Sequence record: MH460460.1
DNA: 64,000 bases
Strand: one strand, 5' to 3'
Under the pieces are notes generated by a model. It ran no database searches and was not told where the DNA came from. It saw nothing but the letters and a program-made list of their open reading frames with translations. Positions 26,492 to 32,302 of this stretch are shown one piece after another. Both the position numbers and the translations under genes were made by a program. The stretch's first letter is position 1, and every line of letters begins with the position of its first letter.

Positions 26492-26844
26492 AATCTTTAA
26501 AACTACTCTGCCTTTTGTTTGTTTCCTGTTTCAGCTTCGGAAGCACTATCGTAACTTCTGTTGGAAACAGTACATTTGTTTCGGATAGTAACGGAACAAC
26601 GGTATACAACAAGGTGGGAAATCAGATTTACGGAAGCGATGGAACATCTGTAAATAGGTATGGTAACACCACTATTCTGAATGACGGGCAAGGCAATTCC
26701 ACCATCTATAATAAAGTTGGTAGCAGCACGTTAGGCAGCGACGGCACGCTGATTCAGAATGTAGGCGGCAGCACTTTTATTACTGACGGCAACGGTAAAA
26801 CAACTGTTTGCTCTCATGTAGGAAACTCAACCTTCTGCAATTAG
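26488..26844 (+). CDS. Secreted beta-hairpin repeat protein
   Basis: Signal peptide MKSLKLLCLLFVSCFSFG; repeats of xVGNxT/SDG; C-terminal CSHVGNSTFC Cys pair. Confidence 0.75.
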   Translation: MKSLKLLCLLFVSCFSFGSTIVTSVGNSTFVSDSNGTTVYNKVGNQIYGSDGTSVNRYGNTTILNDGQGNSTIYNKVGSSTLGSDGTLIQNVGGSTFITDGNGKTTVCSHVGNSTFCN

Positions 26845-27606: not shown

Positions 27607-27867
27607 ATGTTTTCGGGGAAAACTGTTTTTGAATTGAAGGCCACGCACGGATTACCTCTCGATGTATCGGTTGATCGAATCATTGTTCAAAACAATATGG
27701 CAATCGACTGGCCTGAATTTATTCGCACCGCACGTAAAAATCTTCGTTGGGATTTTCAGACAATTTCAGATATTGAAAATGCTTTGATGGATGCCGACGT
27801 GGATCGTAACGTAGCAGCGGAAATTGTAACGCGCTGCAAACTATGGGTGATGCAAAACCCAATTTAA
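27607..27867 (+). CDS. Stand-alone alanyl-tRNA synthetase-like fragment
   Basis: FSGKTVFELKATHGLPLDVS...MAIDWPEF resembles AlaRS lsG..aFkLyDTyGfPldlt...l.vD..gF; AAGGAG SD. Confidence 0.6.
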   Translation: MFSGKTVFELKATHGLPLDVSVDRIIVQNNMAIDWPEFIRTARKNLRWDFQTISDIENALMDADVDRNVAAEIVTRCKLWVMQNPI

Positions 27868-27929: not shown

Positions 27930-28571
27930 ATGAAAAAAGAAACTCTGATCAAAGCAACTAACGCTGTCGCTAATGCAACTCCGGAAGCAATCAAGTCTCT
28001 GGATTTGAAACCGGTGCGTAAATACAAAGAGCATACGAGCTATTCGAGTGCTTTTGCAATCGGCGAACATGCGGAGTTGTGTTTTGATATGTCAGAGCAA
28101 ATTCCTTTCGGTCGTATCGAAGGGATTGAGTTTGGCGTAAACGGAATCAATTACACTGTCGCTATGGCAGTTAATACAGGCACGCAGGAAAAGCCTGATT
28201 ATGAATTCCATAGCGGTCGTCCTATTGTTGGTGTGGATGAGCGCCTGTTGGATTCGTTTGTTTCCACGCTGCCGAATGATATCGCAGGCAAATATCCTAC
28301 GCTGGAAGGTTGTAAATTCCAGATCGGCGATACAGTGCGTTTCAAACTCGAAGATCACGTTGCGAAAGTCGGTGCGGCAATCCCTGTTTTGATTTGGGGC
28401 GTTAGCTACACCAAAGGAAAAGTAATGTATGACGTGAGCATTGACGCAGATGAATATCAAAATACTTCTGCGTACAATGATATCTACGAGCGTTATTTGA
28501 AACACTCAATGGATCGCGTCGATTCTGTTTTCATTCAACCAATCGGCGGGTGGAAACTTGAAACAAATTGA
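27930..28571 (+). CDS. Tandem SH3/KOW-like repeat protein (paralog of 18566-19276)
   Basis: FAIGEHAEL...IEGIEFGVNGINYTVAM and FQIGDTVRF...IWGVSYTKGKVMYDVSI. Confidence 0.6.
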   Translation: MKKETLIKATNAVANATPEAIKSLDLKPVRKYKEHTSYSSAFAIGEHAELCFDMSEQIPFGRIEGIEFGVNGINYTVAMAVNTGTQEKPDYEFHSGRPIVGVDERLLDSFVSTLPNDIAGKYPTLEGCKFQIGDTVRFKLEDHVAKVGAAIPVLIWGVSYTKGKVMYDVSIDADEYQNTSAYNDIYERYLKHSMDRVDSVFIQPIGGWKLETN

Positions 28572-28716
28572 ATTGCTTCCGCATCAAAAAGAAGCTATGA
28601 AACTTATGCGTAGTTCCTCAACGCTGTATATTGAACTGAACAGAGGAACTACATGTACGAGCCTTTCTATTCGTAATAAGGAACAGAAAAATGTCAATGC
28701 GAAAGATCGTAATTGA
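28558..28716 (+). CDS. Small ORF resembling the N-terminus of an SF2 helicase (Q-motif) (not in ORF track)
   Basis: TTG start; KQIELLPHQKEAMKLM; 52 aa. Confidence 0.4.
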   Translation: MKQIELLPHQKEAMKLMRSSSTLYIELNRGTTCTSLSIRNKEQKNVNAKDRN

Positions 28717-29056
28717 AAGCGGCCTCGATTTTGGGGATGCGTGGTCGAAGTTGCTGACTAACATTCACAACGATTCGAAAACCTTACTGGTTATTGATCG
28801 TGAAGGCTGGAACGGTGCTGATCAGTACGTGCGTATTATTTCTCCGCAGGCACCACATCCGGACGATTCGCCCGACGCGTTCCCGCAGAATCCGTATTTC
28901 ACTATGCGCGATAACAACGCTAAGGCTGACGGAACTTTTTCGCCGTTCGCTGTACTGAAAACCACGCAGAACAAAGTTTTTCCGTGGACTCCTTCGCAGG
29001 GCGATCTGTTCGGCAAAGACTGGCGCATTTCTTCGGTGAAAGTAGATGCAGAATAA
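28691..29056 (+). CDS. DUF2829 / Tad2-like (Thoeris anti-defence 2) signal-sponge homolog
   Basis: LDFGDAWSKL...DREGWNGADQYV...FPWTPSQGDLFGKDWRI matches the DUF2829 FgeA...R.gWng...pW.pSq.D.la.DW pattern. Confidence 0.8.
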   Translation: MSMRKIVIESGLDFGDAWSKLLTNIHNDSKTLLVIDREGWNGADQYVRIISPQAPHPDDSPDAFPQNPYFTMRDNNAKADGTFSPFAVLKTTQNKVFPWTPSQGDLFGKDWRISSVKVDAE

Positions 29057-29405
29057 AAATCCTGTAATGCTCGCCGTTAAGATGCAGTTTATTGAGCAAC
29101 TCGCTAACGGCTTCGAAAACACTGCAATCTTTCGTCTCGCCTGCACAATCAATCAGGATAAGAAATTCAATCCGGATGAGGTGTTTGAGAAGGCGAAGAA
29201 TCGCATGTTCCCGGAAGGCATAGAAAAAGCGATTGTATCTGGCTACGATTATATGGTGCTGAAAGCGTATGTGGACGGCAACGAAATTCTGATCAAGCCG
29301 GGTACGATTATTTTTGTTCGTGAGGATTCGCATGTTGGCGTAATCACTACGAGCGACGGCGTTCCGGATGTTTCGATCCGCGATGGAGAATTGATTGTCA
29401 ACTAA
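29046..29405 (+). CDS. Hypothetical protein
   Basis: 119 aa. Confidence 0.6.
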   Translation: MQNKNPVMLAVKMQFIEQLANGFENTAIFRLACTINQDKKFNPDEVFEKAKNRMFPEGIEKAIVSGYDYMVLKAYVDGNEILIKPGTIIFVREDSHVGVITTSDGVPDVSIRDGELIVN

Positions 29406-29883
29406 GGGGAAGTTCGTGACAGCGATACGTGGGTTCGTAACGCGACTTCTCTGCACGCACGATTGGAAACGTTTTCGAACTATTCACGGAGACGAAGCTA
29501 ATTATGCGCGTAGCGAATGGCGTTGCACGAAATGTAACAAACATCGCTACAGTATTTTCATCAACGAAATGGAACAAGATGTTCCCAAAGAGCCGTTGCT
29601 AAAACGCATTGCGCATTCGATCCGCTACACCATCGGAAGCATTGCGTTTCATTGCCTCAACAAAGAAGACCGTGATGCAATTTATCGCGATTATCGAATG
29701 GGGCATGAGTTGCGCACGGTTGAAACGTGGATGTGCGAATTTCCGCAGGCGGTAGAAACAGCACGTTATCTACGTGTCCATAGTTACGGATACAAAGATG
29801 ATTTGCCTTTCGACCATCCGGATCGCCATGCTGCGCGGGATATCTCCTGTTGGCGAGAAGACTTTAGGCGTCGATTTAAATAA
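29395..29883 (+). CDS. Hypothetical protein with an N-terminal C-x-H...CxxC (DUF1660-like) module
   Basis: LLCTHDWK...WRCTKCNK. Confidence 0.55.
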   Translation: MSTKGKFVTAIRGFVTRLLCTHDWKRFRTIHGDEANYARSEWRCTKCNKHRYSIFINEMEQDVPKEPLLKRIAHSIRYTIGSIAFHCLNKEDRDAIYRDYRMGHELRTVETWMCEFPQAVETARYLRVHSYGYKDDLPFDHPDRHAARDISCWREDFRRRFK

Positions 29884-29884
29884 A

Positions 29885-29925
29885 CTGTAAATAAAGGCTA
29901 TCAGCATATTGTTGGTAGCCTTTTT
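29885..29925 (+). promoter_or_regulatory. CTGTAAATA box plus terminator hairpin (site D)
   Basis: CTGTAAAT-AAAGGCTATCAGCA-TAT-TGTTGGTAGCCTTT-TT, intergenic. Confidence 0.6.
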
Positions 29926-29943
29926 CATTTTCTGGAGCGTAAC

Positions 29944-31026: not shown

Positions 31027-31488
31027 ATGAACGAAATTCGTATTGATCGTCCGATAGTTCTCGATTTAAATCCACCTCGCAGAATCACTGTGCGCAATTG
31101 CTATCAGGCTTTGCAGCAACTCACTATCATCTATAATGCCGAAGTTGGCTATGATGATCCGGTTGATATTGCGAATGATCGTGCTTACGCATATCACACG
31201 GCTTTGGTTCCGGATAAAGATATGCGCGAATGGTGTGCGTTAATGCGTCAGTGGAGCGTTATCGATCCAGACACAAAGCAACGTGTATGGGTAATGTATT
31301 TCGATATACCTACCAACGTTACTTTTCAAACGTGCGCAGATCTTTGGAATCAGTATGTCAAACGCGCAACTGAATCCATCCCTTCCGTGCGCATGGAAGA
31401 AATGTGTAAAGTCTTTCTTGAAGAGACAGATTTCATGGAAAGCTATAAGGGGGAGAAACTCGATGTTGAAGAAAATAAAATTTGCTGA
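31027..31488 (+). CDS. Hypothetical protein
   Basis: 153 aa. Confidence 0.6.
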   Translation: MNEIRIDRPIVLDLNPPRRITVRNCYQALQQLTIIYNAEVGYDDPVDIANDRAYAYHTALVPDKDMREWCALMRQWSVIDPDTKQRVWVMYFDIPTNVTFQTCADLWNQYVKRATESIPSVRMEEMCKVFLEETDFMESYKGEKLDVEENKIC

Positions 31489-32302
31489 ATCTCTGCGCTA
31501 CTTTAAAGAAGAACGAGAAGAACAGCGTGCGGAAAAATTGGTTGGCCGTGAATTCAATTTTGAAAGCGGTCGCATTAACGTTCTGGTTGGCGAGAACGGT
31601 AGCGGTAAAAGTTCTTTACTGGAGTCTCTGGCTAAGAAAATTTTGGCGTACAATTACGGGCATACGCGCCTCGATGATCGCCTCATTCGTTTTAATGATG
31701 AATACTGGTCGAAAGAAAATCCGGATCGTTGGTACAGCGACGAACTCTATATGCCAGATGTTTCTCTTGAAACTGATTCTCCAATTTACGGCATGTACAT
31801 GTCGCCTGATTGGAAGCCGTGCGATGCTCTTAATTGGGCGCACGCTCTTTGCTACGGTTTAGGCAAAGAGGCAACGGATCATTTCAAACGCACGGAGAAT
31901 TTTTCTTCCGGTCAGGGTATGAGTAACGTGATTACGCATATCGCAATGGCGTTAAAAGAACGCAGCCCGGAAGTAAGTCTGGAGGAAGTGAAATATCACA
32001 TTCGCCCACAAGATGATAACCATCTTGCGAAGCGTGCGAAGTTTTTACAAAAGCTATTACCTCCTGCTGGAAGTAATATTGTTGCTATGTTTGATGAACC
32101 TGAACGCACTTTAGATTTAGGTTCGCAGCTTGTTTTCTGGCAACTGATGAATGACATTTCGAAGCGTGAGCACGTACAAATCATCGTTGCGTCTCATAGC
32201 TGCATTCCGTTAATGTCTCCGGATAAATTCAATTTCATTGAAATGACGGACGGCTACAAAAACAAACTGCTGAATATTACGGCAGACCTATCTTTCAAAT
32301 AG
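31463..32302 (+). CDS. ABC-superfamily (AAA_21-type) ATPase
   Basis: VLVGENGSGKS (Walker A), SSGQG (signature), MFDEPE (Walker B/D-loop), IIVASHS (H-loop); start ATG 31463. Confidence 0.85.
   Translation: MLKKIKFAESLRYFKEEREEQRAEKLVGREFNFESGRINVLVGENGSGKSSLLESLAKKILAYNYGHTRLDDRLIRFNDEYWSKENPDRWYSDELYMPDVSLETDSPIYGMYMSPDWKPCDALNWAHALCYGLGKEATDHFKRTENFSSGQGMSNVITHIAMALKERSPEVSLEEVKYHIRPQDDNHLAKRAKFLQKLLPPAGSNIVAMFDEPERTLDLGSQLVFWQLMNDISKREHVQIIVASHSCIPLMSPDKFNFIEMTDGYKNKLLNITADLSFK

Follow-up and report, generated by a model that had tools for sequence, protein, structure and literature searches.

JA13_046 of the jumbo phage vB_DsoM_JA13 is a genuine member of the Tad2 family (DUF2829) and belongs to a discrete, phage-only branch of that family with its own conserved loop. 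Judging from its pocket residues and by analogy with characterised homologues, we consider it fairly likely that the protein forms a tetramer and takes up TIR-made ADP-ribose signals as a sponge. In the mechanism that we envisage, (i) JA13_046 would assemble into a homotetramer like the solved family members; (ii) the GWNG loop and the W.PS..D helix would line two pockets between subunits; (iii) these pockets would sequester a TIR-made alarm molecule derived from ADP-ribose, of the 3'cADPR and/or His-ADPR type; and (iv) a host effector of the Thoeris type would thereby stay off. Our literature search found no defence-system inventory for Dickeya solani.

Family membership, fold and distribution of JA13_046

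The 254-kb genome of vB_DsoM_JA13 (MH460460.1), a myovirus of the genus Salmondvirus isolated on D. solani MK10, was analysed in a window of 64,000 nucleotides that matches its bases 1-64000 exactly, and in which JA13_046 occupies positions 28691-29056 (+) within a long series of small plus-strand genes of unknown function. The open reading frame begins with ATG, encodes an acidic protein of 121 aa (pI 5.3) and carries a Shine-Dalgarno-like AAGGA (28678-28682, +) 8 nt 5' of the start codon, as read from the sequence. GenBank names the product (AXG66449.1) only 'hypothetical protein', and in PHROGs it falls in two families, both of unknown function. The original prediction had described a Tad2/DUF2829 homologue with the full family signature, and all three elements are found in this frame: DFGDAW at residues 13-18, REGWNG at 37-42 and PWTPSQGDLFGKDW at 98-111. 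These motifs are not a product of chance, since the HMM of PF11195 (Tad2-like, previously DUF2829) matches with 54.1 bits at E 2.3e-14, above the curated gathering score of 25. The long central insertion that had also been claimed is real, as residues 35-113 (79 aa) span just 57 Pfam positions (16-72 of 73). The only meaningful PDB sequence matches obtained with phmmer are Tad2 (8v3e), ModTad2 (9eib) and SPO1 Gp34.65 (8sme/8wje), with E values from 2.5e-6 to 2.8e-5. Tsi1 immunity proteins also appeared, with weak matches (E 0.012, 36 residues) that were absent from the fold searches, and were set aside as noise.

A first AF2 model, for which 15 close sequences were used, was of middling quality (pLDDT 72); the model based on a 69-sequence family alignment reached a pLDDT of 84.8 and a pTM of 0.78, with all five models in agreement. 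Its secondary structure (H14-23, E31-37, E46-50, E86-90, E96-98, H103-107, E111-117) reproduces the Tad2 fold, namely an N-terminal helix, an antiparallel five-stranded sheet and a short helix before the last strand. VIA-align superimposes the model on ModTad2 and SPO1 Tad2 with Z scores of 9.1-9.3 and an rmsd of 1.7-2.5 Å over 73-85 residues, and on HgmTad2 and SptTad2 with Z scores of 8.5-9.1, and places no chain outside the Tad2 family above Z 2.1. Foldseek gives 18 PDB matches at E <= 0.001, all of them Tad2-family chains. The homology proposed at the outset is thus backed by the Pfam score, the PDB sequence matches, the predicted fold and the two ligand-loop motifs treated below. The model further contains a β-strand at residues 5-12 (28703..28726, +) ahead of helix α1, which is specific to the branch and absent from SPO1 Tad2; it is poorly conserved inside the branch, and alignments of the solved Tad2 chains begin at model residue 9-11. 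All solved Tad2-family members are tetramers, that is, homotetramers built as a dimer of V-shaped dimers with inter-subunit pockets, and by analogy with these relatives JA13_046 most likely forms a homotetramer as well.

The assignment to this family has a precedent in UniProt, where the orthologue from phage JA11 (A0A386K5Y5, 99% identical) is named 'Thoeris anti-defense 2-like domain-containing protein', as are proteins from other large phages, for example PaBG, Simmy50 and Parlo. No member of the branch is found among the 84 sponges of Hadary et al.; their Table S2 contains neither APHP nor PSQGD, and the only NPYF in it belongs to an Acb2 sequence. Given both points, we regard JA13_046 as a new member within a known family, with a putative function read from its sequence.

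The branch comprises 17 clusters, 14 retrieved at 57-95% identity by a word-indexed protein search and three longer fusions retrieved with a branch profile, beyond which the profile score falls from 136 to 64 bits. All 17 show the same insertion and a spacing of 58-59 residues between the tryptophans of the two ligand loops. The branch is found on phage-sized contigs only, the longer ones measuring 59-257 kb, and its jumbo-sized carriers in IMG/VR besides JA29 are L002 (257 kb) and L003 (191 kb). No relative was returned when the patterns FPWTPSQG and GWNGA[DN]QY were searched against 185,579 species genomes of bacteria and archaea. In three proteins (P0015-P0017), the insert-bearing Tad2 domain follows an N-terminal region of about 140-165 aa with a CHKVVRAG...GGYLVVYEDGY motif; they lie on an unrelated 86-kb contig (P0017, L034:5001-5780) among HTH regulators, adjoining a YadA_anchor protein.

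The predicted ligand pocket and the central insertion

In SPO1 Tad2, W25 and W73 make van der Waals contacts with 1''-3' gcADPR, N26 and D79 touch its phosphates and hydroxyls, T78, I63 and T65 contact the adenine, and D67, H71 and S76 contribute water-mediated contacts (Yirmiya et al.), T78 being the sole side chain that hydrogen-bonds the adenine. The GWNG loop (W25/N26 in SPO1 Tad2; W21/N22/G23 in HgmTad2) covers the phosphates, while the W.PS..D helix motif supplies W73, S76, T78 and D79 in SPO1 Tad2 and the equivalent W87, S90, T92 and D93 in HgmTad2, where W21/N22 and S90/T92/D93 are required for gcADPR binding (Li et al.). Both elements are recognisable in JA13_046 alignments, as the GWNG loop G39-G42 (28805..28816, +) and the W-T-P-S-Q-G-D motif W99-D105 (28985..29005, +). 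Seven of the ten SPO1 pocket residues mapped with the HMMER alignment are kept: W25, N26, I63, T65, W73, S76 and D79 correspond to W40, N41, L89, T91, W99, S102 and D105. W40, N41, W99, S102 and D105 are invariant in all 18 branch sequences, L89 and T91 are conserved, the whole GWNG loop is invariant in the branch, and within the segment 99-107 six of nine positions are invariant.

The three differing positions are H71, replaced by F97, D67, replaced by Q93, and T78, replaced by G104; the last of these counts against reading JA13_046 as an ADP-ribose sponge. A visual comparison with the homologues in Table S2 (Hadary et al. 2025) reveals the same pattern in Tad2_68, which likewise has glycine at the SPO1 T78 position, glutamine at W-6, a hydrophobic residue at W-2 and a WTPS.GD motif, so that positions W-6, W-2 and W+5 read Q, F, G in JA13_046 and Q, V, G in Tad2_68. 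[quoted passage not shown] By our own count in that table, six of the eight full-length homologues with both motifs intact inhibit at least one Thoeris type, yet roughly one in two of the diverse Tad2 homologues tested had no effect on any of seven systems (Hadary et al.), and it is for these two reasons that our confidence in a TIR-signal sponge is moderate. Members of the family also bind His-ADPR, N7-cADPR, cGG/cGAMP and cUMP/cCMP, and one binds tracrRNA; because the ligands are so varied, family membership does not fix the ligand.

The proline-rich insertion extends over 35 aa (residues 51-85; 28841..28945, +; consensus APHP..D..A.P.NPYF..DNNA.A.GT) between strand β2 (46-50) and the next core strand (86-90), at a position where the loop of SPO1 Tad2 measures 24 aa and that of HgmTad2 41 aa. 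Expressed as the spacing between the Trp of GWNG and that of W.PS..D, this amounts to 59 residues in JA13_046, 48 in SPO1 Tad2 and 34-35 in the shortest family members. Spacings among the 69 family members range from 34 to 60, and since values of 58-60 also occur in unrelated members, the length alone is not unusual. The sequence of the insertion is unlike that of all other long insertions in this set. It is invariant at 14 of 35 positions, including H56, Y69, F70, D74, G81 and T82, and its mean entropy in the 18 branch sequences is 0.74 bits, compared with 0.27-0.45 bits for the two ligand loops and 1.15-1.7 bits for α1, β1 and β5, so it is better conserved than these three core elements.

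At this very site, other family members form a second pocket at the V-dimer interface, which holds cGG and cGAMP in HgmTad2 and SptTad2 and cUMP in ModTad2, and which is shut in SPO1 Tad2 by stacking of F44. The background on which the original prediction drew is correct: gcADPR is sequestered by SPO1 Tad2, and a large insertion at the same site enables HgmTad2 and SptTad2 to bind cyclic dinucleotides. The further suggestion that the insertion may change the ligand range fits this published precedent. We therefore weigh, as a possible but not a probable reading, a sponge whose main or additional ligand is something other than the type I Thoeris signal, the insertion, possibly together with the N-terminal strand, building a second pocket at the V-dimer interface. 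Such a pocket would hold a CBASS-type cyclic dinucleotide, a Pycsar-type cyclic pyrimidine mononucleotide, N7-cADPR or a signal for which no sponge has yet been described. Besides the location of the insertion and the binding of cUMP by ModTad2 at the same interface, this reading draws on its length, which lies within the 35-41 residues of insertions in cyclic-dinucleotide binders (Li et al.), on the additional or different specificities of the long-insert homologues Tad2_70 and Tad2_76 (Hadary et al.), on the strong constraint described above, and on the retention of the same insertion in a fusion with a different N-terminal domain on the unrelated 86-kb contig. However, the insertion is unrelated in sequence to the other long ones and contains seven prolines among its 35 residues, and the model, an AF2 monomer that would not reveal a pocket at an interface, shows it as coil apart from a short helix at 72-75 (block pLDDT 72-88), whereas HgmTad2 has two helices and a β-hairpin. 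In addition, the branch profile matches HgmTad2 and SptTad2 weakly (E 0.036 and 1.2; SPO1 Tad2, 3.5e-7), and conservation of the insertion could equally reflect an oligomer interface. SPO1 Tad2 uses helix α2 of the loop at this site in its V-dimer interface, and because the insertion replaces the region that forms this helix and interface, the oligomer geometry may differ. By analogy, the insertion probably forms either a second pocket or an altered dimer interface. The anti-CBASS role suggested in the original prediction is weaker than the anti-Thoeris role: the length would fit, but the proline-rich coil, the dissimilar sequence and the poorer profile match to HgmTad2 and SptTad2 do not favour it.

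Genomic context and selection

JA13_046 is under purifying selection (dN/dS 0.12 against JA29), and the closest genome record (G001, 255,356 bp) contains one PF11195 match. Homologues lie between those of JA13_045 and JA13_047 in L002, L003, JA29, L030 and L032, and gene order between the JA13_043 homologue and the ABC-type ATPase JA13_053 is kept in the same five. The Tad2-like protein is 66-70% identical in these comparisons, against 21-60% for five of the seven mapped neighbours, and the JA13_044 homologue in L002 is more conserved than the Tad2-like protein. Such fixed, core-like conservation is unusual and atypical of an accessory counter-defence gene, and it feeds the idea of a role outside defence, in which JA13_046 would, for example, bind a nucleotide metabolite of the host or the phage, or be a subunit with a structural or regulatory task. 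The single copy, the absence of recognisable defence-related domains among ten neighbours scanned against Pfam and PHROG, and the inactivity of many tested Tad2 homologues against seven defence systems point in the same direction. We nevertheless consider a non-defence role rather unlikely, as every characterised family member counters a host defence system and the most conserved residues of the branch are those of the known ligand loops. A TIR-signal sponge remains the reading that we prefer.

JA13_044 (27607-27867, +; 86 aa), a small protein without an assigned function, is under unusual constraint: it is 89.5% identical between JA13 and L002 (257 kb), whereas its flanking genes are 27-56% identical, and it yields only sub-threshold Pfam matches, to a tRNA-synt_2c segment and to SRP54_N. 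JA13_053 (31463-32302, +), a few genes 3' of JA13_046, encodes an ATPase of the ABC/AAA_15/AAA_21 type that is also present in L030 and L032. ATPases of the AAA_15 and AAA_21 types are frequent in defence and anti-defence contexts.

Directly upstream, an unannotated open reading frame of 52 aa (KQIELLPHQKE...; 28558..28716, +) overlaps the end of JA13_045 and, in another frame, the first 26 nt of JA13_046. When JA13, JA29, L030, L031, L002 and L003 were compared in three frames, L030 (P0012, 160 aa) and L031 (P0003, 165 aa) proved to have the homologue fused, in frame, to the Tad2 domain, and L002 and L003 to lack it. We argue that it is coding because the ELLPHQ codons carry synonymous third-position changes across four lineages, JA13 and JA29 differ by a 3-nt indel, and dN/dS is 0.23. 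The frame offset is not a sequencing error, since it is the same in JA13, JA29 and a 51-kb wastewater contig; no indel occurs in this region of the wastewater contigs. The peptide has no Pfam or PHROG match and no paralogue in the genome, and for these reasons the notion that it is a remnant of an SF2-helicase N-terminus, suggested by LLPHQ.EA followed by a G.T-like stretch, was dropped. A bolder reading for the jumbo-phage branch, to which we assign a low probability, is that the insertion builds a new pocket for a signal without a known sponge, while the ELLPHQ peptide (45-52 aa) would be a detachable regulatory head like that of AcrIIA7.

A CTGTAAATA box that immediately adjoins a 14-bp hairpin (29893-29923) and a T-run (29885..29933 as a whole, +), recognised by consensus match only, lies 3' of JA13_048, and the hairpin is likely to mark the 3' end of a transcription unit that includes JA13_046. 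Exact or one-off copies of the box occur seven times on the plus strand, against 1.5 expected; the copy at 26648 stands within a coding region and has no hairpin. A similar sequence, CTGTATATT, at 28624, 67 nt 5' of the ATG, was rejected as a conserved promoter, being absent from JA29 and mutated in a wastewater variant.

Near-identical copies of the region 28400-29500, with 0-5 differences per 1.1 kb, are present in wastewater metagenome runs from several studies, among them the 51-kb contig, which suggests that Salmondvirus-like phages are common in wastewater. Within JA13_046, these copies show point differences only, namely one silent change and two substitutions at variable positions, I25V and K78N (codons read by eye). 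A metatranscriptome contig of 231 nt also falls inside the gene, although contigs cannot show transcription.

Significance and comparison with known Tad2 systems

According to a 2026 review, no anti-defence protein of jumbo phages other than Tad1 of phiKZ has been described to date, and JA13_046 would, as a well-supported candidate, add a second sponge family in this group. JA13-type phages are considered for biocontrol of the potato pathogen D. solani, and defence and counter-defence shape phage efficacy. The branch can further be viewed as a natural experiment in the diversification of the Tad2 scaffold, in which the canonical pocket is kept, a distinct conserved insertion occupies the second-pocket site, and N-terminal modules are fused, split or absent.

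AcrIIA7 (9kzr), a tracrRNA-binding DUF2829 tetramer, belongs to the same family as JA13_046 and carries an inhibitory N-terminal head of 48 aa, in the presence of which its activity is off. Its optional head finds a parallel in the N-terminal module of the JA13 group, a 45-aa peptide fused in sister phages and a separate open reading frame in JA13, but no sequence similarity between the two modules was found and the parallel is an analogy only. An anti-CRISPR role in which tracrRNA would be bound in a positively charged tetramer groove is highly improbable for JA13_046: the family match (9kzr at E 0.004 with the branch profile and 1.9e-20 with the family profile), the long insertion and the optional head of AcrIIA7 would speak for it, but the protein is acidic (16 Asp+Glu versus 13 Lys+Arg) and, of the positive groove of pdAcrIIA7 (K58, K66, K71, K93, R101), the RNA-contacting K66 and K71 align with E38 and A43. 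TracrRNA is confined to type II CRISPR systems. To our knowledge, type II is not among the CRISPR types reported for Dickeya.

ModTad2 from a Myroides odoratus prophage (8v3e, 9eib) is the best PDB match in both sequence (E 2.5e-6) and structure (Z 9.3, rmsd 1.7 Å, 33% identity over 73 residues) and shares the WTPS start of the helix motif with JA13_046, but comprises only 88-89 aa with a short, unrelated insertion. It is a sponge for His-ADPR and cUMP with specificity for type II Thoeris and Pycsar, not type I, and such similarity does not predict the ligand because its specificity differs in this way. SPO1 Tad2 (Gp34.65; 8sme/8smf/8smg, 8wje) falls in the Pfam family of JA13_046 and shares its fold (Z 9.2, rmsd 2.4-2.5 Å, 31-32% identity over 77-85 residues). 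Compared with its 89 aa, the 121 aa of JA13_046 add the N-terminal strand and a longer α1-β1 loop, and the 24-aa loop with helix α2 and the pocket-occluding F44 is replaced by the 35-aa proline-rich insertion. The dual gcADPR and cyclic-dinucleotide sponges HgmTad2 and SptTad2 (8kbi-8kbm, 8wjd) show 22-24% identity, share the fold and carry a large insertion at the same site, which has 41 aa and consists of two helices and a β-hairpin, in contrast to the 35-aa proline-rich coil modelled for JA13_046.
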